Positions 6,288-19,814 of a DNA stretch of 64,000 nucleotides are shown here, one piece after another (position 1 is the first letter of the stretch; each line of letters starts with the position of its first letter). The DNA lies in the sequence record MW460245.1; one strand, 5' to 3'. Position numbers and translations under genes: made by a program. Under the pieces are notes generated by a model. That model saw only the letters and a list, made by a program, of their open reading frames with translations. It did not search any database and was not told where the DNA came from.

Positions 6288-6832
6288 ACGACACCTCGGA
6301 GGGTGCGAACGATACGGCGCAGGCGAACGTTGCTCTTGTCTGCGAAGTAGTTCCGTTGCGGATGCTGGTGACGCGGCTGGCTGAGCAGGCGGTCGATGCG
6401 CAATGCGCGCGTATGCTCTTCACGCGTGAACTCTGGTACGTCGAAGTCCTTCCCTCGGTAGAACACGCGCCGCAGGAAGCCACCGCGGTTCGCTGTCTCC
6501 AAGATAGACTGAGCCATGATCTTGCCAAGCTCTGAATGGGCGTTCGTCACTACAGCCGAGGACCACAGGATCTTATCCTGCTTGAGCTTCTCTTGGTAGT
6601 ACGGTTGCCAGAACTCGAAGTCCTCGATGGCGCGCTTATCCTGCCAGTCCAGATCCATGTGTGCGAACGGATCGCGCTCGAATTCCGAAATGAAGCGTTG
6701 CAGTTCGTCAGGATTGGCTTGAAGCCATGTCTTGGTCCGCTTACGCAGCGGCCAGTAATGATCGATGAAGCATTGAACAGCCTCAGCTTCAGGAGCGAGG
6801 CAGGTTCCAGTCGAGTGCGTCGTAGCGTCCAC
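6284..6832 (-). CDS. Hypothetical protein
   Basis: Operonic; GTG start with RBS. Confidence 0.55.
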   Translation of the reverse strand: MDATTHSTGTCLAPEAEAVQCFIDHYWPLRKRTKTWLQANPDELQRFISEFERDPFAHMDLDWQDKRAIEDFEFWQPYYQEKLKQDKILWSSAVVTNAHSELGKIMAQSILETANRGGFLRRVFYRGKDFDVPEFTREEHTRALRIDRLLSQPRHQHPQRNYFADKSNVRLRRIVRTLRGVV

Positions 6833-6986
6833 GGAATACTCCCCATGCGAGTTTGATTCGAGTTCTCAGGCCACCCGTCGATAACGGGCGGGCCGGAATC
6901 CATTTGCCTTCCACTACCATATGCACGTCACACTTATCCAGCGTGCATGCGAAGATGCGTTGGGGCGCTTGATTACGTTTAGCCAT
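6789..6986 (-). CDS. Small hypothetical protein
   Basis: RBS upstream; operonic. Confidence 0.45.
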   Translation of the reverse strand: MAKRNQAPQRIFACTLDKCDVHMVVEGKWIPARPLSTGGLRTRIKLAWGVFRGRYDALDWNLPRS

Positions 6987-7494
6987 GTGTGTCTTTCTCC
7001 CTCATGTCAGGTTGAATGCAGCAGATACCGAGCTCACGCCAGCGCTCCACAAGAGGCATGTAGTCCTCATACACCAGGAAGACTTCACGAAGGTCACGAC
7101 CAGCGATGTGCTGGAGCGCCCACGGTTTGAATTCCTCATCAGGCATATGGATGTCATGCGGATCGTCAGTCGCCCAACCCTTGATGTGATTCGGCCGCAT
7201 GATAAGCTGATCGTCCTTGATCTTGAGGCTCACATGCTGTCGAAGCTGGTGCAGCGTGGTCAGGCGTGTCTTCTCTGCGCGCGACGTTATGAACAGCACG
7301 TCGAAGACAGAGGGTTGGCTCAGAAAGAACTGGCAGATCGTGACACCCTGTTCAATGGGAGTATCTCGCTCCCAGGCGTTGTGGAACGACTCCCAGTCTC
7401 CGTTATCGAGGAATCGAGCGCGTGCCTTGTTCGAGAGGAGACAACCATCCACATCGAACAGGCAGAGCTTTTTAAGCTTGCGGCGCGGCAGCAT
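6979..7494 (-). CDS. HAD-family phosphatase (PseT/PNKP 3'-phosphatase-like)
   Basis: LFDVDG motif I, ITSR motif II, IMRP...K, YED motif IV; alternative TTG start at 7530. Confidence 0.8.
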   Translation of the reverse strand: MLPRRKLKKLCLFDVDGCLLSNKARARFLDNGDWESFHNAWERDTPIEQGVTICQFFLSQPSVFDVLFITSRAEKTRLTTLHQLRQHVSLKIKDDQLIMRPNHIKGWATDDPHDIHMPDEEFKPWALQHIAGRDLREVFLVYEDYMPLVERWRELGICCIQPDMREKDTHG

Positions 7495-7768
7495 CGAGGG
7501 CCTTCCATGCGCGAACGAGACGGCGTTCAAGGACTTCGCGGTACTTGTCCATGTAGGACAGTTGATCGCGCAGGTCGAATTGCTCTTCGCCTACCAGCGT
7601 AGTGAACAACCCATTCTTGGTGATGAAGGCAGCAAGAGCAACGCCCTTCAGCTTGAGCTCTGCGTGCTCCTGGTAGACGCGCTGCATGTGCGCAGGCAGG
7701 AGGCGCACGTCGATATCACGAATGCTCACAGGTGCAGCGGAAGCGTTGGAAGTGTAGGTCGATGCCAT
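7472..7768 (-). CDS. Small conserved phage protein (crAss001_48-like helical hairpin)
   Basis: EHAEL..K...LAAFI...F..L..EEQ..L..QL..M..Y..VL..RL pattern. Confidence 0.6.
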   Translation of the reverse strand: MASTYTSNASAAPVSIRDIDVRLLPAHMQRVYQEHAELKLKGVALAAFITKNGLFTTLVGEEQFDLRDQLSYMDKYREVLERRLVRAWKALDAAAPQA

Positions 7769-7782
7769 TTCAGACTCCTTGT

Positions 7783-8454
7783 TTAACGACGAAGGCCCTT
7801 AGCGAGGGCAAAGAATTCCTGGCGAACCTCCGGCTTGCGGAAGTCACCGCCGAGTTGCGAGGTGATCGTGTCGCTGCATGCGTCCATCACGCCTCGCGTT
7901 TTGACGCACATATGCTCTGCTTCAAGGACGACCGCGACGTGAGGCGTGTCCAGGATGAACTTGAGCGTCTCGAAGATTTGGGCAGTCAGGCGTTCCTGCA
8001 CTTGCGGTCGACGGCAGAAGAAGTCCACGATGCGATTGATCTTGGACAGGCCCACCACGTCCTTGTTTGGGATGTAAGCAACAAATGCCTCGCCAATTAT
8101 TGGCAAAAAATGGTGCTCGCAGGTCGAGTGAACCGTTGCATGACCACGGATCATCTCGTCATATTTGAACTTGTTCTCGACGACGGTAGCCTTCGGGAAG
8201 TTGTTGTAGTCCAGGCCATAGAAGATTTCCTGGGTGAACATCTTGGCGATACGCTTCGGCGTCTCGTACAGCGAATCGTCCTTCAGGTCGAGATTCAGTT
8301 CGGCCATGATCGCAGCCATATGCGATTCGATCTCTGCGCGGCGCGGCTTATGGAGCTCCGGGTGATGGACCATCGGCGTTTCCAGACCCATTTCGTACAG
8401 GTGCTGGTGAACCTTATGGCCGATGCTTGCGTCTTTCTGATATTCCGTTTTCAT
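7783..8454 (-). CDS. folE: GTP cyclohydrolase I
   Basis: ETPKRIAK, STCEHHFLP, GLSK, RPQVQERLT, HMCVKTRG. Confidence 0.97.
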   Translation of the reverse strand: MKTEYQKDASIGHKVHQHLYEMGLETPMVHHPELHKPRRAEIESHMAAIMAELNLDLKDDSLYETPKRIAKMFTQEIFYGLDYNNFPKATVVENKFKYDEMIRGHATVHSTCEHHFLPIIGEAFVAYIPNKDVVGLSKINRIVDFFCRRPQVQERLTAQIFETLKFILDTPHVAVVLEAEHMCVKTRGVMDACSDTITSQLGGDFRKPEVRQEFFALAKGLRR

Positions 8455-9076: not shown

Positions 9077-9397
9077 TTACGCCAGCGTGGTCGGTGCTGC
9101 TACTGCGCGGTTGAGCCACATGAAGGCTGTTTGGAAGTGGCGCATCGCTTCGTCTACTGCTGCTTCAGAGGACGTGACGGTCGATTGCGGCGCTTCCTTG
9201 TTTTCGAGGCGTTGCTGCTCGCGTGCTGCGATATGCGCGCGAACCTTCGTCAGCTGGTAACGCACGCCTTCGCCGAGACCTTTGTTTTCATTCATCAGGT
9301 CGACGTCGGACTGCGTCAGCTTGCGATAACCGCTGATCGGAGGCGGCGTGTACACTGCCTCGATAGGATCGTCATTGCTTTTGATCTGTTCCTGCAT
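9077..9397 (-). CDS. acb2: Acb2-like (T4 Vs.4 family) cyclic-oligonucleotide sponge, anti-CBASS candidate
   Basis: ISGYRKLTQSDVDLMNENKGLG...HFQTAFMWLNRAVAAP matches the Acb2 pattern GYRxLSQEEIDxMNxxKxLG...QTGxMxxxRAxAQP; RBS CAGGAG. Confidence 0.8.
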   Translation of the reverse strand: MQEQIKSNDDPIEAVYTPPPISGYRKLTQSDVDLMNENKGLGEGVRYQLTKVRAHIAAREQQRLENKEAPQSTVTSSEAAVDEAMRHFQTAFMWLNRAVAAPTTLA

Positions 9398-9827
9398 TTT
9401 GCTTCTCCTGTTGAACGAGGTGCATCGGCGTGAAGCGAACAGTGCCATCCTCAAGATTGCCATAGAACATCTCACGCGGGCGCGCGTAGATGTTTCGCTT
9501 GTGCGGCCAGAGGTGCTCGTAGATCACCAGCTGTTCTTGGTTCTCTGTGTGCAGTGCCTCGAACAGCACTCGGTAGAGACCGCCCTTGTAATGGCGGTGT
9601 GTTGCAAGCGCAAGAGCTTCCGTTTCAATCAGAAACGTCTGACCTGCGATTTGCTTGGTTGCGGCAGTGACACGTGCCCAATCTTCGATCGTCTCAGCAC
9701 GCCAGCGCAGCGTGCGGCCAACAGAAGCGTCTGCTCCTGGGAACTTGTTCTCAGCACGCCAGCGATCGATAGTGCTTCTGGAGATATGCAGGTACGCTGC
9801 TACCTCCTTGATGGTCATCGTTTTCAT
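9372..9827 (-). CDS. AlpA/excisionase-like HTH fused to DUF1653
   Basis: MTIKEVAAYLHISRSTIDRW...FP...RW plus HRHYKGGLYRVL..A.H.E...LV.Y...ARP..MF. Confidence 0.75.
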   Translation of the reverse strand: MKTMTIKEVAAYLHISRSTIDRWRAENKFPGADASVGRTLRWRAETIEDWARVTAATKQIAGQTFLIETEALALATHRHYKGGLYRVLFEALHTENQEQLVIYEHLWPHKRNIYARPREMFYGNLEDGTVRFTPMHLVQQEKQNAGTDQKQ

Positions 9828-10018
9828 GGGTACATGATCCCTACAGAGTTAACGACAGGAGCCTGATAACCGTTCTCATCAGAGAAGAGCGAACTACCAG
9901 TTTCGAGAGCGTAATCAGTGATAGCATCCTCGACATACGTTGTCAGACGGTGCTCGTCTTCCTCGGTGATGTGGTCAGGCCATTCGACTTCCACTACGTA
10001 ACGTCTCTTCAGTGCCAT
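9824..10018 (-). CDS. Small hypothetical protein
   Basis: TAATG coupling with the queE stop. Confidence 0.5.
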   Translation of the reverse strand: MALKRRYVVEVEWPDHITEEDEHRLTTYVEDAITDYALETGSSLFSDENGYQAPVVNSVGIMYP

Positions 10019-10881
10019 TATGCCATTGCCACGAAAAGGTGTTGTTGGAGGCTCAAGCAAATGTTGTTCGCAAGAGCGTACTCACCTGCGTATCGGTAAT
10101 TGGCCGCCGTTGCCTCACGGTTGATGAGCTCGTCGTCCCAGATGCTAGAGACTTCACCTGCGTAAGGCTTCTTGTAGACAGCCATCGGCGATACCATCAA
10201 GCGCTGCATGCCGTGCTCTTCGGCCCATGCAAATGCCCAGTCAGGGATCGTGTGATGCGGCGACTCAGGATCAGCATCGACCACGAACTTCAGGTAGTCA
10301 GCGCGGTTCAGCACCTTCTCCGACAGCTTACCGTACTTACCTGCCTTGTAGACAGCCTTCGGAGAGACAACCACCGTGATTTCAGAAAGCCAGAAGCTCT
10401 CAGCATCGCCTTTCTTGAACAGTGGCATCTCTGCATCCAGCAGCTCAAAGAAGGAGGCCTGCGTGCCGTTCGTTTCGATCTGGACTGCGAGGTATTCATC
10501 TCCGACGCGCTCGAGGAACGCAGCGAGGTTATGCTGGAGCGTAGGTTCGCCGCCGGTGATAACCAGTACACGTTTGCGTCGGTCAACGCGGAAGGTATCG
10601 ATGATCGAATCGATCTTGTCGAACGACATGACCTTACCTTCGTTGAACTGGAACGAGGTGTCGCAGAAACGGCAAGCGCCAGCCTCGCTCTTTGCTCCGT
10701 AGTTGCAGCCAGATAGACGGATGAAGACAGCAGGCATCCCGGCGTAGGGCCCTTCGCCCTGCAGCGTGTCGAAAATCGAGGTGACCAACAGTTCGTCAGG
10801 CTTCAGGATGTAATCGTATTCCGCTTTTGCAACGTTGCGGTCAACGTTCTGTACAACAATGGGGAACGTCTTATGCGTCAT
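10018..10881 (-). CDS. queE: 7-carboxy-7-deazaguanine synthase (radical SAM), atypical CX10CX2C motif
   Basis: SIFDTLQGEG...PAVFIRLSGC, CRFCDT, VITGGEP.LQ, QIETNG, VVSPK, SLQQH; RBS AAGGA before ATG 10881. Confidence 0.95.
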   Translation of the reverse strand: MTHKTFPIVVQNVDRNVAKAEYDYILKPDELLVTSIFDTLQGEGPYAGMPAVFIRLSGCNYGAKSEAGACRFCDTSFQFNEGKVMSFDKIDSIIDTFRVDRRKRVLVITGGEPTLQHNLAAFLERVGDEYLAVQIETNGTQASFFELLDAEMPLFKKGDAESFWLSEITVVVSPKAVYKAGKYGKLSEKVLNRADYLKFVVDADPESPHHTIPDWAFAWAEEHGMQRLMVSPMAVYKKPYAGEVSSIWDDELINREATAANYRYAGEYALANNICLSLQQHLFVAMA

Positions 10882-10895
10882 GGTGATTCCTTGGC

Positions 10896-11342
10896 TCAAT
10901 AGCTCATCTTGTGGTGGTCCCTCGTGTCTGCGTCGAAGATACCTTTGACCTTCTTCTTGAACACAGGTGCCGTGGAGTTGAATGCATGCCTTGTATTTAC
11001 TTTGCACGCCTCCGGTTTACCACGCTTCGTCTTGATGTACATACCGCGAAGCACCACGCAGTCCACGATAGGGATACCAGCCGTAGTAAGCGCATCGACC
11101 GAATCATGGACGTAGGAGTTCGTCGGTGAGCCTGCTTGAACCCACGCATCAATCGAAGGGTAATGCGGATGCTTCGTCTTGAAGACCAATCCACCTAGAC
11201 AGCTCTTGCCCTTGAAGATGACACGCTTCGGTTTGACGACCTTCTTGGCTTTCTTTGCCTTAGGACTTTTTGCGCTTGAGGCTGCTGCCTGTTGCTTTTT
11301 TGCCTGGTCCTTCTGGGAAGGTTTTGCCGTGGAATTTTTCAT
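10896..11342 (-). CDS. Hypothetical basic protein inside the deazaguanine operon
   Basis: Fills the dpdA-queE gap and overlaps the dpdA 3' end by 83 nt. Confidence 0.5.
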   Translation of the reverse strand: MKNSTAKPSQKDQAKKQQAAASSAKSPKAKKAKKVVKPKRVIFKGKSCLGGLVFKTKHPHYPSIDAWVQAGSPTNSYVHDSVDALTTAGIPIVDCVVLRGMYIKTKRGKPEACKVNTRHAFNSTAPVFKKKVKGIFDADTRDHHKMSY

Positions 11343-12600
11343 AGCGAGAGATTACAGCCTCGTAGTGTGCGTCTGTCTTGATTGTTGTCTGAGCGAGACC
11401 GGCCAGCCCCTTCGTCTTCGAAGTGCTACGCATCGGCTTCCACTTGTTCGCCATCACATCGCGAATGTAGTTCACCAGCAAAGTGAACTTGTTCAAGGTG
11501 ATGTTGAGGTCCATCTTCTGGTGCACCTCAGCCAGCGGCACCTTACCTGCGAGATAGTCCTCAGCCAGTGCACACAGGAAGCGTGTCTGTTCAGCACGTA
11601 CCCACAGGTTGTGTGCTTCGAGGATACGCCACGAATGAATGATGCGCAGGTCATCGATGGACGTGCAGATAGGGCAGTTGCACTGCGGGGTCTGACGATA
11701 CGCCTGGTTCTTCTTCAGGTCCAGCGTCTTGAAGTCAGCCGTGTCGTACATACCGACCAGCGCTCCGAGACGATGGCTCACCGAGTCAGCGCCGATATTC
11801 TTCACGTAGCCGCTACGTTCCAGCAGCGCATAGAAAAACATCATGAGCTTGGATGTTACACCCAGGACGTGGAAGTACTCAGTCTTCTTGTGGTAGCGGC
11901 TAATCACATACATCAGGTTCTCGACTGCTGCGTTCGTGCGGTCGATACCTGGCGGCGGCTTGATGCCGAGACCTGCGATTGCTACCACGTTCGCCTTACG
12001 ATCCAGCACGTCAAGTCTGGCTTTACGAAGTTCGACCGTCGACCCGTGACTGATGAGTGCCAGATCGATACCGGGATCGAGGCGCTTCAGGATGTAGTCG
12101 TCATTAGCCTTGATGAGGTGCGACACCTGACGGAAGTACGCAGGTTCGAAGGCGGTTCGCACCGGCAAGTCCAGAGGCATGCCGATGTTTGCGTCCTTGT
12201 TGTAGCGGTCAATCACGCCATCCGGATGCACGAAGTCCACGTTGGCTCGCAGCAGCTGGAAGCCACCCGAGTCTACGATGGACTTGATGCCCTGTTTCTC
12301 GTACGGTGCTTTCTTGTAGTCCTTTCCCACTTCAGGGTTCGCCAGAACGAGGGAAAGCCCGCATGCCTTGATGGCCGTCGGGCTAAAGATGGGAACGCAA
12401 ACGTCGAATTGCTCTTCAGGAATGACCGCACCACGTGCTGAGGACATGGCCTCTACGACGGTGCGATCCTTTGTACGCCAACGCTTGACCTTCGGGCCAA
12501 ACTCGGTCGTTTCTTTTTCATTGGGCTTGTTTTTGACGTACAGCTGAGCAGTCCGCTCGCTGTACGCCTCAACGCCCGCCGGTACATAGTGGACGGTCAT
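11260..12600 (-). CDS. dpdA: TGT-fold guanine transglycosylase, DpdA-like (DNA 7-deazaguanine insertion)
   Basis: DSGGFQ, MPLDLP, AIAG, FHVLG, GADS, zinc site CNCPIC...HNL; adjacent to preQ-pathway genes. Confidence 0.85.
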   Translation of the reverse strand: MTVHYVPAGVEAYSERTAQLYVKNKPNEKETTEFGPKVKRWRTKDRTVVEAMSSARGAVIPEEQFDVCVPIFSPTAIKACGLSLVLANPEVGKDYKKAPYEKQGIKSIVDSGGFQLLRANVDFVHPDGVIDRYNKDANIGMPLDLPVRTAFEPAYFRQVSHLIKANDDYILKRLDPGIDLALISHGSTVELRKARLDVLDRKANVVAIAGLGIKPPPGIDRTNAAVENLMYVISRYHKKTEYFHVLGVTSKLMMFFYALLERSGYVKNIGADSVSHRLGALVGMYDTADFKTLDLKKNQAYRQTPQCNCPICTSIDDLRIIHSWRILEAHNLWVRAEQTRFLCALAEDYLAGKVPLAEVHQKMDLNITLNKFTLLVNYIRDVMANKWKPMRSTSKTKGLAGLAQTTIKTDAHYEAVISRYEKFHGKTFPEGPGKKATGSSLKRKKS

Positions 12601-12612
12601 TGTGTTCCTTGG

Positions 12613-13725
12613 TTAAAGCGTTCGCAGCTCGTGAATGATATTGCGCATACCATCCGTATCGAGGTCGTCCATCTCTTCCATGAAGTAGAACGGATTCTCC
12701 TCGTAGGCGCGCATATGGCGGATCATGGTGTCGTGCCCCATGTCCCTGAACAACCATTTACTGCTCACGAACTCCGGATGCGAGGCGGCATCTGTCAGCA
12801 CAGGTGCGCACCCATAGATCATGGCCTCAGCAATGCAGTAGCCGTAGTTCTCTTCCCGCGAATGCGAGACCATCATGACAGCAGAGGCGAGCTCTTCGTG
12901 GTACTGCTGCTTGGTCAAGTTCACCTTGATATCGAGGACGCCATCTTCCTGCGCGAGAAGTGCCTGACGCACCACCGCATCGTCGTTCGAACGCAGCGTC
13001 TTACGTGAGGACGTGATGACGAATTGCCATTCCGGGAACTGTTTCTTGAGATCGCGGAACAGGTCGATGGTGACGATCGGATTCTTCTCGGTGTCCAAGC
13101 GGTTCGTCAGCAGGATTTTCTTCTGCTTCGGAATCAGCTTACCAAGCTTCTGGTACTCGGACAAGAAGATCGGATTCTTCGTGACCTTGATGCGGTCTGC
13201 CAGATGCAGTGCGTTCAGCGGAGCGAGACGCCTCGTCATCACTGCCTTCTTGTGGTACAGAGAACCAACGAACACCTTATCGCATGCTGCGATCCAGCCC
13301 ACCTCAGTGTATTGCTGATACGGCGCAGCAACCTCGAATGCGTCGCCCTTCGTGTACGAGGCAGCATGAAGAAACGACACGAGGTGCACCTTCACCTTGT
13401 TCATTTGCGCCATCAGACGAATCTGTTCGAGGCCCCAGAACTCCGTATCGAACACGAAGATGATGGCGCCGTCTTCGACCTCACCGCGATTGAACATGCC
13501 AGCGAGGTACTGGAGTTGGGTGCTCTTGTAGTGACACGTCGAGTTGATGTCGAGGAACGTACCGACCTTGATGTCGTCCTCCAGCAACGGCTCACCGTTG
13601 ATAATGAACACATCGAAGCCAGCCTTGCTGAGTGCCTCGGGAATGCGGCGATACCATTGCTCTGTGTAACGTTCGCTGAGCGGTTCGATCGGCAGGCAGA
13701 TGAGTTGCTTGCGGTCAGTATGCAT
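12613..13725 (-). CDS. GT-B fold glycosyltransferase (GT4-like)
   Basis: NRLDTEK and E-X7-E motif EENYGYCIAE followed by AMIYGC.PV. Confidence 0.85.
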   Translation of the reverse strand: MHTDRKQLICLPIEPLSERYTEQWYRRIPEALSKAGFDVFIINGEPLLEDDIKVGTFLDINSTCHYKSTQLQYLAGMFNRGEVEDGAIIFVFDTEFWGLEQIRLMAQMNKVKVHLVSFLHAASYTKGDAFEVAAPYQQYTEVGWIAACDKVFVGSLYHKKAVMTRRLAPLNALHLADRIKVTKNPIFLSEYQKLGKLIPKQKKILLTNRLDTEKNPIVTIDLFRDLKKQFPEWQFVITSSRKTLRSNDDAVVRQALLAQEDGVLDIKVNLTKQQYHEELASAVMMVSHSREENYGYCIAEAMIYGCAPVLTDAASHPEFVSSKWLFRDMGHDTMIRHMRAYEENPFYFMEEMDDLDTDGMRNIIHELRTL

Positions 13726-14182
13726 TGTCGTCGAGCTCCAGGTCACCCTCGAAGTCAGCCGGGGCGGTTTTGATGGCCTGCGTTACAGGGAACACGAACA
13801 CATGGCGGTCGCGCTCGAACTTGATTTGATCGCCTTCACGCAAGCATTCGATGTCGGTGAAGCTCCAGAACGCAGGGCCTTCCACTTCGTTCTGACCTAG
13901 CCAATGGAACGCAGAAGGATCGACACGCAGCATGAGCGTGATGTTGGACGGACGGTACTCAACGCGCGTCTTGGTTACGTCCATGGTCACGTAGCAGCTA
14001 AACTCCAGCCCCACCTTTTCATACGTGAGGATACCGCTGTTGTCACTTATGTACAGGTGATTGATGCTATGCACGCGCAACGCGTTCTGCACCTTTCGCG
14101 TGTGGTCGCGGACGAACTCTGCGTTGGTGAACAGGGTGGGGATGCCCTTGAGGCGCCCCTCTACTTCCAGTCCGATTTTCAC
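13715..14182 (-). CDS. Hypothetical protein in the modification operon
   Basis: Tightly packed between the deacetylase and the GT; N-terminal GLEVEGRLKGIPTLF. Confidence 0.7.
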   Translation of the reverse strand: MKIGLEVEGRLKGIPTLFTNAEFVRDHTRKVQNALRVHSINHLYISDNSGILTYEKVGLEFSCYVTMDVTKTRVEYRPSNITLMLRVDPSAFHWLGQNEVEGPAFWSFTDIECLREGDQIKFERDRHVFVFPVTQAIKTAPADFEGDLELDDNAY

Positions 14183-14185
14183 TTG

Positions 14186-14893
14186 TTACTCCGTTGTGTA
14201 TTGAATGTCGCCCCAGCGCATCTCGACCTTGTCTTTGCAGACTTCAAGAAGGTACGAATAGAATTTGGCGACGCGTTCTCTGACAGTAAAGCCGCCAACC
14301 TTCTCTGCATAGCGGGCCCTTACGTCCTGCATTTCGAGGCGATTCCAGTCTTCGTCAGTACACTTCACACATACACCTGCACCGTAATGCACAGTGTGCC
14401 ATTCGTAGATGTTGAAGTCCTGCTGTCGGATGTCCTCGAACAGGTAATACTTGGCATCGTTCTGCCAGAGGGAGGACTGCGAAAGGTAGAAGCTGTCCAA
14501 CAGTCGGCGCTTGTCCTTCGAAGCTTCCTCACCGAGGTACACACCTCGTTTCATGTCCACGCTGTAGAAATGAGTGGCGAAGTGCCGCCACCCCCTATTT
14601 ACAGCTTTGTGATCGTCGTGCCAGTCTTGGATCGACGGCACGTATATCTCGTTGTACTCACTCAATGGCAGTGCGTTCTGCTCCCCGAAGTACGGCGTGA
14701 CATGAAGATGCTCGGCGAAGTCCAGAGCTTCACGACGACGAACATTCGTCAGTTCGTTACACCACAGCACTGACACCTTGTAGTCAGGTACAGCCATGTT
14801 TACCGCAGCGCCCCAGCCTTTGCGGATGATGCTGTAGCAACCGATGAGCTCATCGTCCACGTGAGGAGCGATGATTAGAACCTTTGTAGGCAT
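14186..14893 (-). CDS. PIG-L/LmbE-family N-acetyl-sugar deacetylase
   Basis: IIAPHVDDELIG and WHDDH metal motifs. Confidence 0.85.
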   Translation of the reverse strand: MPTKVLIIAPHVDDELIGCYSIIRKGWGAAVNMAVPDYKVSVLWCNELTNVRRREALDFAEHLHVTPYFGEQNALPLSEYNEIYVPSIQDWHDDHKAVNRGWRHFATHFYSVDMKRGVYLGEEASKDKRRLLDSFYLSQSSLWQNDAKYYLFEDIRQQDFNIYEWHTVHYGAGVCVKCTDEDWNRLEMQDVRARYAEKVGGFTVRERVAKFYSYLLEVCKDKVEMRWGDIQYTTE

Positions 14894-14905
14894 TTGTTGC
14901 TCCTG

Positions 14906-15553
14906 TTAGCAGTCGGTATCCAGCGGAATGTCGATCAGGTATTCATCACTGAAAGACACGTTGAATCGATCGATGAAGGCCCAAACGTCCATGTCCGTCC
15001 AGTCATAGATCGGATAGATGAAGTTCAGGCCACCCAGGCCGTTCGGTACGTAGCACGTCAGCTCTTCACGGGACGCAATAGCACCGTTGCGCACGAAGTT
15101 GGTCGAACGGCCGTCACCTCGATCAAACTCAGAAATGCGCGTACCATCGATCTGCGTGGTGTAGCCTGCACGAACGCACTCCTCGAGAGATGCGAATACG
15201 ATCGGACGCTTGCGCGCAGACTCGTACAGGAATTCGCGGGTCAGCGGATGCACCTTGTTCGGACCTGTCGTCTTCGGATTGTGGACCACCTTCATAGGCT
15301 TGTCCCAGAACTCTCGGTCACGCTCATGATATGCAGCACGTGCCAGGAAGTCTACGACGACGCTATCCTTGCCGCCGCTATGGCCGACGAATGCACGGTT
15401 GAGATCGAAATTACCGCACGACTGAAGGCTTGCTGCATTGATACGACGCGTTGCCTCTGCGGCCTTTTCGAAGATGCCTGCCCAGCACTTAGCATATTCG
15501 ATGTCGTCGAACTGCGCGTAAGGCTTGGTATCCGGCTTAGAAATAACAGTCAT
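14906..15553 (-). CDS. PAPS-reductase-like PP-loop (adenine nucleotide alpha-hydrolase) protein
   Basis: HSGGKDS PP-motif, DGTRISE, YPIYDWTDMDVW; lacks the C-terminal ECGLH motif. Confidence 0.8.
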   Translation of the reverse strand: MTVISKPDTKPYAQFDDIEYAKCWAGIFEKAAEATRRINAASLQSCGNFDLNRAFVGHSGGKDSVVVDFLARAAYHERDREFWDKPMKVVHNPKTTGPNKVHPLTREFLYESARKRPIVFASLEECVRAGYTTQIDGTRISEFDRGDGRSTNFVRNGAIASREELTCYVPNGLGGLNFIYPIYDWTDMDVWAFIDRFNVSFSDEYLIDIPLDTDC

Positions 15554-16463
15554 TGTTGAAGATTCCTTGTTCATCGTGGAAGACACGCAGCTTACCTGCA
15601 GGGACTTGACCGCGTTGCAGCACCAGACGCGGGATCGTGAGGAAGTCAGCTTCGACTCCAGCGCCGAAATACGCGGCAAGCATGATGCGCGCACGAGAGA
15701 TGAGCGCACCGTCACCGAACTGTTCAACACTGTCCAGAACGATCCACACGTCGAGGTCTGAGGTCGAGGGCCACTGAGGTTCCTTGACCAGCAGAGTCAC
15801 CTTCAACTCATTCGCGATTGCTTGCCACTTCTCCGATTCAGCGAACACAGGCTTTTGCTCTTCGACGTCCAGCAGAGCGATAACCTTCTTGAATGCATCA
15901 GGACGTGACACACCGTCGAACACGTTCGGCAGGTTGTATTGCGTCATGAGACGACGCAACGTGGCGTGGGTCTTCATTCGGAAATCATCCGACGGACGCT
16001 TGCCATCTTCCTGATACGCCAGAGGCGGCAGGTAGAAGATTTGGTCATATGTCGAGAGCCACGACAGGATATAGCCTTCCATGCCCTTCACCATCGGGTG
16101 ATCGGGGAAGTCGGTGCACGCGATAGCGTACAGGTCCAGCACGCTGCGATCAGTGATGACGATATGCGCGTCGCCCTTCAGCTCTGCCTCTACCTCAGCC
16201 TTCACGAGATTCGAGATCATCCCGAAGTGTGCACGAGGATCAGCCGGGAAGTGTTCATCCTTCCAAGTGATCTTGCGATCTTGGCTACTGACGACTTCGG
16301 CGAGGACATGGTACTGACGCTTGAGGCGTGCAGTAGTCTCCAGTGCCATCGTCGTCTTGCCGCTGCTGTTGGTACCAGTGAAAGCAACCTTGTACTTCGC
16401 ACTGCGCGGCTTGAGGGTCGATTGGGATGCGTCCACGAATTGTTCCATGAGAGTCTTGGTCAT
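15537..16463 (-). CDS. P-loop nucleotide kinase (AAA_28/NadR/TMP-kinase-like) with extra C-terminal domain
   Basis: AFTGTNSSGKTT Walker A, ITDRS, EDGKR lid; C-terminal SDLDVWIV. Confidence 0.75.
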   Translation of the reverse strand: MTKTLMEQFVDASQSTLKPRSAKYKVAFTGTNSSGKTTMALETTARLKRQYHVLAEVVSSQDRKITWKDEHFPADPRAHFGMISNLVKAEVEAELKGDAHIVITDRSVLDLYAIACTDFPDHPMVKGMEGYILSWLSTYDQIFYLPPLAYQEDGKRPSDDFRMKTHATLRRLMTQYNLPNVFDGVSRPDAFKKVIALLDVEEQKPVFAESEKWQAIANELKVTLLVKEPQWPSTSDLDVWIVLDSVEQFGDGALISRARIMLAAYFGAGVEADFLTIPRLVLQRGQVPAGKLRVFHDEQGIFNNDCYF

Positions 16464-16468
16464 GATGA

Positions 16469-16837
16469 TTACTGGATGATGTAGTGACAAACGGCACCGC
16501 ATTCGCCGTCTTCGGAAACTTCGATGATGAGGTCACGCTTGACCCGATCACCTTGGTAGTGTTGATCGAGGCGCTTCGCCAGATCGTCTGCGATCATTTC
16601 ACAGCTCTTGTGATTCAGTTCCAGCGTACCATCCTCGTACCAGCCTTCCACCATATTCAGGAACTGATGGAACTCGATCTCACGATTGTCGTGATGCACT
16701 TCGATCTGGATGCGGAACTTGAACAGGTGACGATGACGGTCGCGCAGGTACGCAACGTCTTCTGGTGCGTTCGGATAGAAGTGATAGCCTTTGCGTTGGA
16801 AGGTGACGTAGATGAACTTCGGATTGTGTGCCAGCAT
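16469..16837 (-). CDS. dpdL: QueD-paralogue T-fold protein, DpdL-like (predicted CDG decarboxylase)
   Basis: LRDRHRHLF (LxxxHRHxF), REIEF, KSCEMIA, VSEDGECGA; lacks the QueD catalytic Cys. Confidence 0.7.
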   Translation of the reverse strand: MLAHNPKFIYVTFQRKGYHFYPNAPEDVAYLRDRHRHLFKFRIQIEVHHDNREIEFHQFLNMVEGWYEDGTLELNHKSCEMIADDLAKRLDQHYQGDRVKRDLIIEVSEDGECGAVCHYIIQ

Positions 16838-16867
16838 ATGAACCTCAGAGTGGGTTAGGACTCAATC

Positions 16868-16877
16868 TATTTACTAC
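16868..16877 (-). promoter_or_regulatory. GTAGTAAATA motif heading the dpdL-to-queE operon
   Basis: Exact motif 31 nt upstream of the dpdL start. Confidence 0.6.
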
Positions 16878-16890
16878 GTGAGTCGCATGA

Positions 16891-16930
16891 GAAAAGGAAA
16901 CAGGAGCCCGTCCCTGAGGAAGAGCTCCTG
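16891..16930 (-). terminator. Intrinsic terminator after queD
   Basis: CAGGAGC/GCTCCTG stem followed on the minus strand by TTTCCTTTTC. Confidence 0.65.
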
Positions 16931-16943
16931 ATCGTTACTGCGT

Positions 16944-17417
16944 TTAATCCATCACTGCGCCTACTGCGGATTCTCCAGTGTATATAGCGCTATTGCCACC
17001 ATGCTCGCGCACCTCGCACTCAACAACCCATACGCGATCACCGTACTTTTCATCGATGATGCGTGAGGCCACGTTGAAAGCGAATTGGGCAAAGCGTTCG
17101 CAGCCAACACCCGGTTCCATGACCACCACGTCCATGATACCACGACGTTGTGCTTCCATGAACCATTCGAGTTCCGGGTCGTCCTTCGCTACCACTGTCT
17201 TGTGGTCGAAGGTATTGACCAACTCAGCCTTCAGCTCTTTCAGGCCACCGAAGTCGGTTACCCACCCTTTGTCGTCCAACTCATGCGCCGCGAACTTGAA
17301 ACCGATCTGGACAGCGTAGCCATGAAGCTTGCAGCAGTGCGAGTGCGTCGCGCGCCATTGACGGAAGGCGCAGGACAGGCCCACGTCGTGGGTGTACGTT
17401 TTGGTACTAAGGAACAT
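16944..17417 (-). CDS. queD: 6-carboxy-5,6,7,8-tetrahydropterin synthase
   Basis: CAFRQWRATHSHCCKLHGY, WVTDFGGLK, FDH, VREH..NSAIY. Confidence 0.93.
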   Translation of the reverse strand: MFLSTKTYTHDVGLSCAFRQWRATHSHCCKLHGYAVQIGFKFAAHELDDKGWVTDFGGLKELKAELVNTFDHKTVVAKDDPELEWFMEAQRRGIMDVVVMEPGVGCERFAQFAFNVASRIIDEKYGDRVWVVECEVREHGGNSAIYTGESAVGAVMD

Positions 17418-17439
17418 TCAGGTTCTCCTGTTGTATGCT

Positions 17440-17694
17440 CTATTTACTACCTTCAGAAAGGTTGTCAACGATGACGCTCATCCCGTAGAGGGTACCAATG
17501 CTGCCGACATTCTTAACCTTGTCTAAGAAGCGATTAACACCGTCGTTGAACGCAGCATGCATTTCCCATTTGTCCGTTATGAACAATGGCGTTCTCCCAG
17601 CTTTCGCCCTTCGCATGTAGCGGAAGCGGCCTGCTTGTGCCTTATTCGGCGGATGCTTCCTGTGCCGCCGCATACTCATCAAACTGGATGCCAT
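17440..17694 (-). CDS. Hypothetical basic protein
   Basis: Operonic position. Confidence 0.45.
   Translation of the reverse strand: MASSLMSMRRHRKHPPNKAQAGRFRYMRRAKAGRTPLFITDKWEMHAAFNDGVNRFLDKVKNVGSIGTLYGMSVIVDNLSEGSK
17441..17450 (-). promoter_or_regulatory. GTAGTAAATA motif upstream of queD
   Basis: Exact motif 24 nt upstream of the start. Confidence 0.6.
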
Positions 17695-18035
17695 AGAATT
17701 TCGTCCTTGATGTCTTCTTCGAGGATGACGGAATGTGCGGTTTGAATATGCACGTTGACGTTCATGCTGTCACCGACGTTGTTGGCCAAAGAGCAGCAAA
17801 TTGAACCAGCCTGAATGAGTTCCTGATTCACCCATTTCTCGAGGATGCGTACGAGCAGGCCAGTGATGATCCTGCGTTGTACATCGACAGGGAATATCTG
17901 CTCTCGGGAAAGCTGATCCCTGATGACCTGCTCGCGAGCCTCCCGCAGTTCCTGCATGATGAGGCGAAACACCATTGCCTGTTCAGCAGGAGACTGCAGG
18001 TAATAAGGCTTCGTAATGTGGTCGCGATTGTTCAT
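17679..18035 (-). CDS. Hypothetical protein
   Basis: ATGA coupling with the HD gene. Confidence 0.55.
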   Translation of the reverse strand: MNNRDHITKPYYLQSPAEQAMVFRLIMQELREAREQVIRDQLSREQIFPVDVQRRIITGLLVRILEKWVNQELIQAGSICCSLANNVGDSMNVNVHIQTAHSVILEEDIKDEILWHPV

Positions 18036-18790
18036 CGCATCACCGGCTCATCTTCCGATCCTACTGGCATCACCACACCACCCTGCGAATAGTCCCACTC
18101 ATTGACCAAGTCCACAAATGCACGCAGTGCACGGGTCAGTTGGAAGCGGCGCATATCCCGCGCGTATTCTGTGAACAGCTCTGCAGTCACCTGGAACGTG
18201 TAGACTCCGTCCACGAAGGCTTGAAGCTGTTCAACGGTAGCGCAGTCCATCCGCTTCCGATTCATCTCCTCGTACAAGCCGATGAGTACCTGACGGCCAG
18301 CCGGCGTGTACAGCATCATGAGGTCGGCATCGCGCAGGCATTTCTGAGAATACGTCACAGGTTCAACAGGGAATTGTTTGCCGTCGAACCACGTACACTT
18401 GATGAGGTCCACCACCGTTTCCACATCGTAGTCACTTCGGGCGCTGTTAGTGAGATAGCGCGGCATGTATTCACGCACGAAGGTAACAGCGCTATCGATG
18501 TTCCGTTCGTCCGACGTGACTCCACCGCTGTGGTTGAAGTCATGCATGAGCGCTGCAACCATCAGGTTATTCGAAGTGCGCAGCGAGAATTGTTCCTTCG
18601 GACCATGCATGAAGGCGCTGATCGCGTGGAACGCTACCAGCATCATGTGACCGACGTTGTGGTAAGGGTTCGCGCAGTGGACGCCTTGGTCCATCATACG
18701 TGCTACCTGACCGATGACGTTGTGTTGGGCAATGAACTCCTTACGCAGTTCGCCCAGCTCGAATACATTCATAGTGCCAAAGCTAGCCAT
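18032..18790 (-). CDS. HD-domain phosphohydrolase (PDEase-like)
   Basis: NPYHNVGH, AALMHDFNHSG, LRDADL. Confidence 0.8.
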   Translation of the reverse strand: MASFGTMNVFELGELRKEFIAQHNVIGQVARMMDQGVHCANPYHNVGHMMLVAFHAISAFMHGPKEQFSLRTSNNLMVAALMHDFNHSGGVTSDERNIDSAVTFVREYMPRYLTNSARSDYDVETVVDLIKCTWFDGKQFPVEPVTYSQKCLRDADLMMLYTPAGRQVLIGLYEEMNRKRMDCATVEQLQAFVDGVYTFQVTAELFTEYARDMRRFQLTRALRAFVDLVNEWDYSQGGVVMPVGSEDEPVMR

Positions 18791-18791
18791 G

Positions 18792-19814
18792 TTAACCTCG
18801 TTGAGTCTTCGTGTATGAAAGGGACTTCTCCAACAGCTTCACTACCTCCTTCGGGAGCTTCTTGCCTGTGAGGTGATAGCTGAATGCTTCGGCAATCGTC
18901 TCCTTGTAATTCTTGCATGCATACTCAGAGATGACAGGAGCCAGCTCTTTGTTCGTCACGCGTTTCGGCCATAGGTACTGAAGGTCATCGCGGTAGTCTG
19001 CTTCCCACAGCAGATCCAACTCCTTCGCAGTGATGCCATGCTGCTGGCTGATCGTGCGGAGAATCAGCTTGTATGCCTCAGTATCCTCTTCTGACAGATT
19101 GCTCTTGAAGTCAGACGGACGGTCTTCCTGTGCAAGCAGGTCAGTAAGGAAGCGTTTGCAATCCTCCGCCTTCACTTGCCCAATCTTGATTGAGCTATTG
19201 AAGAGGCGAACCCACTTTGCTTCTAGCTTCGTGCTGTTCTTCAAAAACTCGTAATGCCAGTGATGACCGAGCTCGTGATGAATCACGTACTGCATTTCAC
19301 TGAGCGGCTGGCACTCGGGATGAATCTGGAAACGATGCGGCATCTTCTCGCTGTTGGCCGAACGCAGATACATGCCGGCATACTTGCCACCGTTGTAGGG
19401 ATGCACTTCCCACAGACACGTCGTCGGATCGATCAGGTAGTCGAGACCATTCGCCTTGAGGGTCTTGTATGCCTTGCTGAACCCTTTCAGGATCTTGTCG
19501 CGTGTTTCCTTTTCAGGAGTGTAGAACCAGCAAAGTGCTCCGAAGTCTTCGTGCGTCTTGCGGCCCTTATACAGGGAACCTACCTCGGTACCGTACACCT
19601 TGCCTGCTGCGGGATCAGGACCCAGATTCAGGATCACGTCCTTCTTAGGTACTTCGACCTGTACGCGAAGCTTGGGGATATGCGAGTTCTTTTCAAGGGT
19701 ACCGGTCACGATGCCCTTGTGAATGCTTTCCATCTTGAATAGGAACTTACGTGCGCTCTTGCCAGCTTCGTCGCGTACTGTTCCGATAAGGTAATCGCCA
19801 GCCGTGAATTCCAT
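18792..19814 (-). CDS. Zincin-like metallopeptidase-domain protein
   Basis: IHHELGHHWH (HExxH) and distal Y..KN..E.IAEAF; RBS AAGGA before ATG 19814. Confidence 0.6.
   Translation of the reverse strand: MEFTAGDYLIGTVRDEAGKSARKFLFKMESIHKGIVTGTLEKNSHIPKLRVQVEVPKKDVILNLGPDPAAGKVYGTEVGSLYKGRKTHEDFGALCWFYTPEKETRDKILKGFSKAYKTLKANGLDYLIDPTTCLWEVHPYNGGKYAGMYLRSANSEKMPHRFQIHPECQPLSEMQYVIHHELGHHWHYEFLKNSTKLEAKWVRLFNSSIKIGQVKAEDCKRFLTDLLAQEDRPSDFKSNLSEEDTEAYKLILRTISQQHGITAKELDLLWEADYRDDLQYLWPKRVTNKELAPVISEYACKNYKETIAEAFSYHLTGKKLPKEVVKLLEKSLSYTKTQRG

Follow-up and report, generated by a model that had tools for sequence, protein, structure and literature searches.

The DNA of the Cellulophaga phage phiST contains 2'-deoxy-7-deazaguanine (dDG); the proteins DpdL and DpdA3 were defined by Cui, Hutinet et al., NAR 2023 (PMC10516641). 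In the same publication, phage ACP17 was listed as a DpdL/DpdA phage; dDG was not obtained from dpdL plus dpdA of ACP17 or phiST in Escherichia coli, and other enzymes were considered perhaps to be needed (PMC10516641). Genes of this type were analysed here in the Burkholderia jumbo phage BCSR5 (record MW460245.1; 227,351 bp, circular), bases 1-64000 of which represent the window, i.e. the whole stretch of 64,000 nucleotides under analysis. Positions 10000-18000 were 100% identical to MW460245.1 with unchanged numbering. Within the window, a glycosyltransferase (GT) gene at 12613-13725, a gene for a protein of 155 amino acids (155-aa protein) and an LmbE/PIG-L gene are located on the minus strand, shortly 5' of a gene for a TGT-like DpdA. 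The GT very probably works in the deazaguanine pathway and, judged from the encoded proteins, there is about an even chance that the product is a glycosylated 7-deazaguanine in phage DNA.

BCSR5 and phiST have in common the genes for synthesis of 7-carboxy-7-deazaguanine (CDG), a DpdL with the signature LxxxHRHxF, a TGT-like DpdA, and the absence of QueC. The slot between DpdL and DpdA3, which is occupied by the GT in the BCSR5 family, contains a small P-loop protein in phiST (gene 66); an identity of gene 66 as a GT or as a 155-aa-like protein was ruled out. In ACP17, a GT homologue is located between the dpdL and dpdA genes. None of the eight known deazaguanine bases of DNA bears a sugar. 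The DNA of phage PA5oct resists several restriction enzymes in a pattern that points to a modified, unidentified G, and is attacked by a nuclease sensing hypermodified DNA (PMC12191111). PAC2, a close relative of PA5oct, carries a GT homologue.

Glycosylation of phage DNA is known for pyrimidines, with the alpha- and beta-glucosyltransferases of T4 and the arabinosyltransferases of RB69 and DLP3, the latter being GT4-like and BshA-like enzymes acting on 5-hydroxy(methyl)cytosine (PMC13326640). As in BCSR5, nucleotide-sugar GT-B genes are situated beside base-modifying genes in these phages. Their acceptor, however, is a pyrimidine hydroxyl made at the nucleotide level, whereas the partner in BCSR5 would be a purine analogue inserted by base exchange. 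We know of no sugar deacetylase in the DNA glycosylation systems of T4, RB69 and DLP3.

A GT4 enzyme followed by a zinc deacetylase of the LmbE family is typical of BshA/BshB, MshA/MshB and PIG-A/PIG-L, and the same order of activities, including an ATP-dependent third enzyme, is predicted for BCSR5. The third enzyme is the CysRS-like MshC or the BshC ligase in the mycothiol and bacillithiol pathways, and a PP-loop protein of the PAPS-reductase type in BCSR5. Sequence identity to the BCSR5 proteins is only 11-16%, and in BCSR5 there is no thiol chemistry and the context is one of viral DNA modification; the likeness is one of logic, not of membership.

Two further systems connect glycosyltransferases with deazaguanines. 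In huimycin biosynthesis, HuiG transfers N-acetylglucosamine (GlcNAc) from UDP-GlcNAc onto the exocyclic N2 of a 7-deazaguanine derivative; RoyL, a QueC homologue, couples adenylated CDG (AMP-CDG) to amines (PMC7439116; bioRxiv 10.64898/2026.04.15.718813). HuiG was compared by description only, not by sequence: like the BCSR5 GT it is encoded together with FolE, QueD and QueE homologues, but its substrate is the free base O6-methyl preQ0, and the actinomycete natural-product cluster has QueC and neither DpdA nor DpdL. The tRNA-queuosine alpha-mannosyltransferase QTMAN/GTDC1 is a GT4 enzyme acting on a 7-deazaguanine derivative already in nucleic acid, with the cyclopentenediol of queuosine in tRNA as acceptor. 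In the literature searched, no pathway was found with the GT, LmbE, PP-loop and 155-aa genes described here, nor any report linking a glycosyltransferase to deazaguanine in DNA. The publications on BCSR5 itself (taxonomy, reviews, comparative genomics, therapy) do not appear to address its DNA chemistry.

The GT comprises 370 amino acids as annotated; the longest open reading frame (ORF) extends to 13746. By its sequence, the predicted protein was confirmed as a member of the GT4 / Glycos_transf_1 family (Pfam E 9.5e-11; 42 bits versus a cut-off of 26.4). A scan of the 227-kb genome gave 43.6 bits, with 12613..13725 as the only Glycos_transf_1 gene. The E-x7-E motif is formed by E292 and E300 in REENYGYCIAEA, with E300 invariant and E292 conserved in at least 90% of 37 homologues. 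R209 and K214, which we take to be the diphosphate-binding basic pair of GT4 enzymes by equivalence with PimA and MshA, are invariant across the BCSR5-type family, as are about 55 other positions, including many aromatic and acidic residues of the N-domain. Because both donor-site and N-domain residues are conserved, the GT is predicted to be an active enzyme with a defined acceptor.

An AlphaFold2 (AF2) model based on 32 homologues (pLDDT 91.4, pTM 0.90) adopted the canonical GT-B/GT4 fold with two Rossmann-like domains. Structure comparison with VIA aligned the model over 300-340 residues to many GT4 structures (Z 22-28), the best being BshA (3mbo, Z 28.1), closely followed by sucrose-phosphate synthase (6kih), glycogen synthase, MshA and others; Foldseek gave E values of about 1e-12. 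Tetrahydrobiopterin glucosyltransferase (9v0l) was also among the matches. T4 AGT and BGT were absent among the best 50 matches listed per PDB structure search with the GT, these being filled by GT4 enzymes. The search of Swiss-Prot models was led by YqgM, MshA, Drosophila tRNA-queuosine mannosyltransferase and PIG-A with indistinguishable scores; the Drosophila QTMAN ranked fourth (E 3.2e-13, TM 0.68), a rank indistinguishable from those of other GT4 enzymes, and the BCSR5 GT gave no Pfam match to the QTMAN N-domain.

The resemblance to BshA was considered as a sign of a UDP-GlcNAc donor and rejected. The RB69 and DLP3 arabinosyltransferases share the top structural matches of the GT (BshA 3mbo, MshA and 6kih), and since BshA is also the top match of these phage DNA-modifying enzymes (PMC13326640), it is uninformative on GlcNAc. 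The shared matches do indicate that GT4 enzymes can act on DNA bases; the identity of the sugar is not given thereby.

Gene linkage supports the assignment of the GT to the deazaguanine pathway. GT genes were found by tblastn in 22 phage records. In X1/BUDD, ACP17, Phosso, BUCT-ZZ01 and the PA5oct-like PAC2, the GT homologue was inside a FolE/QueD/QueE cluster in every GenBank context inspected. Relatives of the GT numbered 288 in the protein database (E <= 0.001), many of them on contigs larger than 100 kb, and 202 in IMG/VR; among 185,579 prokaryotic species genomes (one genome per species) a single relative was detected, in a metagenome-assembled genome. The GT family is almost entirely viral.

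For a linkage census, ORFs were called in 88 loci (L numbers denote loci here and below) and searched with iterated hidden Markov models (HMMs) built from the BCSR5 proteins; dereplication of the GT at 90% identity resulted in 74 clusters. Of the 74 clusters, 65 encoded DpdL within 3 kb of the GT and 61 had a DpdA-like gene within that distance, as an immediate neighbour in 39 of them. FolE was present in 57 clusters and QueE in 54. The conserved core is DpdL-GT-DpdA; the stop codon of one gene often overlaps the start codon of the next. The gene arrangement was seen again on dozens of viral contigs unrelated to each other, far more often than chance would allow.

Other genes of the cassette were less widespread. 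The LmbE gene was found in 29 clusters, all with a GT at least 39% identical to that of BCSR5; the GTs of the 45 clusters without LmbE were 22-44% identical. The PP-loop gene occurred in 26 clusters and never without LmbE (26 versus 0), the 155-aa gene in 28 (directly upstream of the GT in 25), and a P-loop kinase-like gene in eight.

In BCSR5, 11 genes between 7783 and 17417 are oriented in the same direction on the minus strand, closely packed or overlapping, with 12 nt between the GT and DpdA genes. Nearly all genes across the region are labelled 'hypothetical protein' in MW460245.1. The features of the cassette are as follows.

7783..8454, minus strand: FolE, GTP cyclohydrolase I, first step to 7-deazaguanine (Pfam GTP_cyclohydroI E 2.4e-57; same label in MW460245.1).
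10018..10881, minus strand: QueE, CDG synthase (Pfam Radical_SAM E 1.1e-11; PHROG QueE-like E 3e-38; motif QGEGxxxGxPxxF).
10896..11189, minus strand: small conserved ORF, 97 aa, following DpdA in BCSR5-type loci (same-position homologues in 10 loci; no match in family searches).
11260..12600, minus strand: DpdA-type DNA guanine transglycosylase (TGT superfamily), pI 9.4 (DSGGFQ and CxCPxC, profile A5).
12613..13725, minus strand: GT4-type GT (GT-B, retaining-family; Pfam Glycos_transf_1 E 9.5e-11, AF2 model, motifs).
13715..14182, minus strand: 155-aa protein, partial beta/alpha barrel with weak QueE resemblance (AF2 pLDDT 91.3, alignment A6).
14186..14893, minus strand: LmbE/PIG-L-type zinc amidohydrolase, putative N-acetylhexosamine (HexNAc) de-N-acetylase (PHVDDE and HDDH, profile matches).
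14906..15553, minus strand: PP-loop ATP pyrophosphatase, PAPS-reductase/CysD/FAD-synthase family, SGGKDS (PHROG 2302 E 4.8e-12; Pfam PAPS_reduct partial).
15537..16463, minus strand: P-loop kinase-like protein, AAA_28/NadR-like, accessory (Pfam AAA_28 E 5.5e-11; 8 of 74 clusters).
16469..16837, minus strand: DpdL, QueD-like T-fold, proposed CDG decarboxylase, 122 aa (LxxxHRHxF, tblastn).
16944..17417, minus strand: QueD, 6-carboxytetrahydropterin synthase (Pfam PTPS E 2.7e-15; PHROG QueD-like E 6e-41).

A first-pass annotation of the window had proposed a GT-B enzyme with an E-X7-E motif and a PIG-L-type enzyme with PHxDDE and HxDH motifs, separated by one unassigned gene and located directly upstream of dpdA. 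All four elements were recovered: the GT by the Pfam score of 42 bits, E292/E300 and the AF2 fold; the PIG-L-type enzyme by conserved PHVDDE and HDDH motifs and profile matches to TT1542 and BshB; the intervening gene as 13715-14182, without a family match; and the DpdA at 11260-12600 by DSGGFQ, CNCPIC and a profile match to archaeosine TGT. The view of GT and deacetylase as a pair within the dpdA cassette held in part: both are conserved components of the cassette, but the tightest partners of the GT are DpdL and DpdA, the deacetylase being present in 29 of the 74 clusters only.

The BCSR5 protein encoded at 11260-12600 is inferred to be a TGT-like DpdA, with base exchange on DNA predicted from its context. 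In alignment A5 (BCSR5 and three relatives), D110-Q115, C307, C309, C312 and H330 were invariant. The A5 profile matched archaeosine TGT (ArcTGT, 1iq8) with E 1.3e-5 over both motifs, which were aligned to vDSGSFQ and CSCPVC. The BCSR5 protein alone gave no Pfam or NCBIfam match; a relative in L008 (22% identity, BLASTP E 4e-19) scored 29.7 bits on tgt_general, for which the cut-off is 47.6. Single-sequence PDB searches with DpdA, GT and LmbE returned nothing useful, and profiles were required. Smaller loci have DpdA-like proteins of about 330 aa in a BLAST cluster of their own; hhalign, with alignment at the DSGG and DS(T)S motifs, connected this cluster with the DpdA family (85-88% probability, E about 5e-6).

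Between BCSR5 and X1/BUDD, the GTs were 47-48% identical, while outside the catalytic motifs the DpdAs (11260-12600 versus L002:10112-11425 and L003:5727-7001) were not similar by BLAST; the CxCxxC zinc site was present only in the BCSR5 type. Apparently, the DpdA partner was exchanged, or its sequence changed far more rapidly than that of the GT. A gene with a ParB_N domain follows the DpdA-like gene in L049 (11973-12677) and 13 other loci, reminiscent of the ParB-like DpdB that partners DpdA in bacteria.

The DpdL of BCSR5 carries the motif LRDRHRHLF, which fits the signature LxxxHRHxF replacing CxxxHGH of QueD, as defined previously (PMC10516641). By tblastn it was 60% identical to its ACP17 counterpart and 30% identical to phiST at the DpdL position (CGPG_00067). 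In Rhizobium phage RHph_I1_18 (L090), which has DpdL without this GT, a macro-domain (Appr-1-p processing) protein is encoded after DpdL at 6402-7226.

In the LmbE-type protein, PHVDDE is located at residues 10-15 and HDDH at 92-95. Among 28 homologues, H11, D13 and D14 were invariant or conserved in at least 90%, and D90, H92 and H95 were invariant; the C-terminal half is family-specific. The first motif of LmbE enzymes provides the zinc ligands His and Asp and a general-base Asp, and the second, HxxH (HPDH in MshB), the third zinc ligand and the oxyanion His. The Pfam PIG-L score of 24.3 bits was under the cut-off of 28.2; the relative P0163 reached 28.6. The family profile matched the structures of TT1542 (1uan, E 5e-4) and BshB (6p2t, E 0.03) in alignments spanning both motifs, with the D90/H92/H95 region aligned to DRHPDH of TT1542 and BshB. 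With both motifs and the profile matches present and the Pfam score sub-threshold, the protein was treated as a divergent member of the LmbE/PIG-L superfamily. In 18 of 37 LmbE ORFs (e.g. L008:5345-6238, L020:8797-9591 and L029:2011-2757), a DpdL T-fold domain follows the LmbE N-domain at the C-terminus, a fusion by which the deacetylase is tied to a deazaguanine-binding protein. The LmbE protein of BCSR5 itself showed no DpdL-like remnant in its C-terminal part.

The PP-loop protein obtained an Atlas feature score of 0.95 and a structural TM of 0.76 to PAPS_reduct clusters. The 155-aa protein has an invariant N-terminal GxExEG and no Fe-S cysteines; neither a family match, a Foldseek match nor an Atlas lead was obtained. 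A wide VIA search with its AF2 model gave three QueE structures in the top four (6nhl, Z 7.1; 5tgs, Z 6.6; 4njg, Z 6.0), values near noise. The N-terminal motif resembles QGEGxxxGxPxxF of QueE; hhalign aligned the two over a 19-column motif only, at a non-significant 4% probability. Since it rests on VIA matches of Z 6-7 near noise, the connection to QueE was treated as a lead only. A 351-aa PP-loop protein with a tail starting like the 155-aa protein (GxExEG...PTLF) is encoded in L036:8946-10001, L037:7678-8733 and L042:1255-2310, and is probably a PP-loop::155-aa fusion (hhalign 20% probability).

From these components a six-step pathway can be proposed. In the first step, FolE, QueD and QueE would lead to CDG, by chemistry established for these families. 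No QueC homologue was found in the whole BCSR5 genome, so the canonical route stops at CDG. DpdL would then convert CDG, most likely to 7-deazaguanine, as has been proposed in print though not proven, and the TGT-like DpdA would exchange guanine in phage DNA for the deaza base, as expected from its family. Gene linkage and the intact donor site suggest that the GT4 enzyme would transfer a sugar from a nucleotide sugar to the deaza base, which most likely is in the DNA by then. For the BCSR5 subclade, the transfer would probably be that of a HexNAc, from which LmbE would remove the acetyl group. To our knowledge, all characterised LmbE-family enzymes deacetylate a GlcNAc glycoside or closely related conjugate after a preceding glycosyltransferase; HexNAc transfer followed by deacetylation is therefore the most economical reading. 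In a speculative sixth step, the PP-loop ATPase and the 155-aa protein may act on the same intermediate, possibly in an ATP-dependent derivatisation of the freed amine. The strict coupling of the PP-loop gene to LmbE, usually with the 155-aa gene alongside, implies that the amine may be derivatised again and not left cationic; the coupling suggests that the freed amine would undergo an ATP-dependent step, that there would be a ligation with CDG similar to that of bacillithiol, or that a special sugar donor would be made. The final product would be a bulky substitute for guanine, possibly with an amino sugar, shielding the DNA from restriction and similar defences.

Several points weigh against this pathway. 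Bare 7-deazaguanine lacks an obvious O- or N-nucleophile on its major-groove side, and attachment would need N2, O6 or a carbon. If DpdL yields bare 7-deazaguanine, the linkage is thus chemically puzzling, since N2-, O6- or C-glycosylation by a GT4 enzyme of this kind would be unprecedented. The donor sugar is not distinguishable from the structural matches of the GT, and the LmbE-type protein remains under the curated Pfam cut-off. The GT is mildly acidic (pI 6.0, versus 9.4 for DpdA). The LmbE::DpdL fusions (18 of 37 ORFs) and the probable PP-loop::155-aa fusions point towards free-base substrates; these fusions, like the acidic GT, would be compatible with decoration of the free base before its insertion by DpdA.

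Such a route can be formulated in detail. The GT4 enzyme would make a GlcNAc glycoside from which LmbE would free the amine; the PP-loop protein, with CDG held by the 155-aa protein, would adenylate the CDG carboxylate and couple it to the amino sugar, and DpdA would insert the resulting 7-carboxamido base. A GT4 enzyme, LmbE and an ATP-dependent enzyme in one pathway mirror MshA/B/C and BshA/B/C, and the strict coupling of the PP-loop gene to LmbE, the two kinds of fusion tying both enzymes to base-binding domains, the QueE structures as top matches of the 155-aa model and the acidic GT fit this order of events, for which RoyL (amines coupled to AMP-CDG) and HuiG (a free deazaguanine base glycosylated) offer precedents. 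Yet the DpdL-GT-DpdA core is kept in the 45 of 74 clusters without LmbE or PP-loop genes, so the core function of the GT cannot depend on this ligation logic. Moreover, DpdL as the proposed decarboxylase would destroy the carboxylate that is needed, the CysD/FAD-synthase branch of PP-loop proteins is known for adenylyl transfer to oxyanions and not for amide formation, and the QueE resemblance is near noise. Ligation before insertion was considered unlikely.

A second alternative places the LmbE-like protein on the base itself, as an amidohydrolase of a carboxamide or N-acyl deazaguanine, with the PP-loop protein as a non-orthologous stand-in for QueC and the GT transferring a plain hexose. 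In line with it are the many proteins that join the LmbE domain to the base-binding T-fold of DpdL, the lack of QueC in BCSR5, the borderline Pfam score and the family-specific C-terminal half. It was nevertheless judged improbable: the characterised LmbE enzymes act on GlcNAc-type amides or close conjugates, LmbE is limited to one GT subclade, as expected if the GT donor had changed with it, and an amide-forming PP-loop protein and an amide-cleaving hydrolase would oppose each other on one base.

It was regarded as quite improbable that the GT, with or without LmbE, acts on neither nucleic acid nor deazaguanine and is merely a co-regulated early gene product, with a pterin intermediate, an envelope component, or a protein of phage or host as acceptor. 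GT4 acceptors are very diverse, the tetrahydrobiopterin enzyme 9v0l is among the matches, and the GT is acidic; however, in phage lineages and gene orders that differ greatly the gene is placed between DpdL and DpdA, with stop and start codons that often overlap, cellular genomes are virtually free of the family, and the presence of QueE in most loci means that the pathway proceeds past pterins. That the GT-B protein has no catalytic role and serves DpdA as a structural partner or specificity subunit, as its translational coupling to DpdA in many loci and the inactivity of ACP17 DpdL plus DpdA alone in E. coli might suggest, is hardly to be expected, with R209, K214, E292 and E300 invariant or conserved in at least 90% together with about 55 other invariant positions, as for an active enzyme.

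Variants of the cassette were observed in several lineages. Second or third GT4 genes are present in the same cassettes in L071 (three GT ORFs in tandem), L008:6255-7589, L010, L014 and L005:4007-5350; tandem genes, up to three, would be expected if an oligosaccharide (di- or trisaccharide) were built in some lineages. A purine phosphoribosyltransferase gene is located inside the cassette in five loci (L005:2078-2551, L006:9327-9761, L017, L049 and L055), BUCT-ZZ01 and PAC2 included, which hints that some phages also make deazaguanine nucleotides. This count refers to the five loci of BLAST cluster 11; the results of the corresponding HMM were discarded because of drift onto FolE. The smaller DpdL-GT loci contain extra radical SAM genes, a SPASM-domain enzyme between DpdL and GT or a radical SAM protein of about 450 aa beside the cluster (L054:8403-9353, L060:8547-9422, L068:1198-2607 and L029:70-1440), suggesting that the base undergoes additional carbon chemistry in these phages. 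In one cassette, a DUF2264 protein (L009:5095-6240, Pfam E 1.5e-65) is encoded between the kinase-like and PP-loop genes.

Other minus-strand genes are interleaved with the BCSR5 cassette or lie upstream of it. A HAD/PNKP-type phosphatase (6979-7494), a crAss001_48-related protein (7472-7768) and an HTH_17 plus DUF1653 protein (9372-9827) are interleaved with the cassette; the phosphatase gene also adjoins FolE in L009. A 106-aa protein with an Acb2/Tad1 hairpin domain (9077-9397, Pfam E 1.1e-11), of which a faint homologue exists near the L009 cassette, is probably a sponge for cyclic-nucleotide immune signals. Upstream, a phosphohydrolase (18032-18790; PHROG 16069, E 4e-42) and a 'peptidase' (18792-19814; PHROG 17197, E 2e-86) are encoded, both without a Pfam match. 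A terminator-like hairpin at 16897-16914 (minus strand) falls within the 106 nt that separate QueD from DpdL, the only sizeable gap within 11260-17417 (QueD to DpdA); the promoter and terminator scan as a whole was not above the shuffled expectation.

Taken with its relatives, the BCSR5-type cassette seems to be a widespread and undescribed variant in which deazaguanine replacement is joined by glycosylation of the DNA. As far as gene content can tell, the chances are balanced that many large phages (at least 74 distinct lineages in IMG/VR, plus BCSR5, X1/BUDD, ACP17, Phosso, BUCT-ZZ01 and the PA5oct group) carry glycosylated 7-deazaguanine; in the BCSR5 clade, its sugar would be an amino sugar on which a module of LmbE, PP-loop and QueE-like proteins would act further. 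A sizeable viral GT family with a testable substrate is thereby defined (202 relatives in IMG/VR, 288 protein matches), which may supply enzymes for site-specific glycosylation of DNA. If the proposal is true, it would provide a candidate identity for the modified G of the PA5oct-like therapeutic jumbo phages and an explanation for the failure of DpdL plus DpdA alone to reconstitute dDG. It would also be relevant to restriction, to Type IV and glycosylase-based defences, and to artefacts in the sequencing of such phages. The DpdL-GT-DpdA core would make the first sugar-bearing purine analogue in natural DNA, and two strategies by which phages hide their DNA, the replacement of G by 7-deazaguanine and the glycosylation of pyrimidines, would merge in a new class of base.

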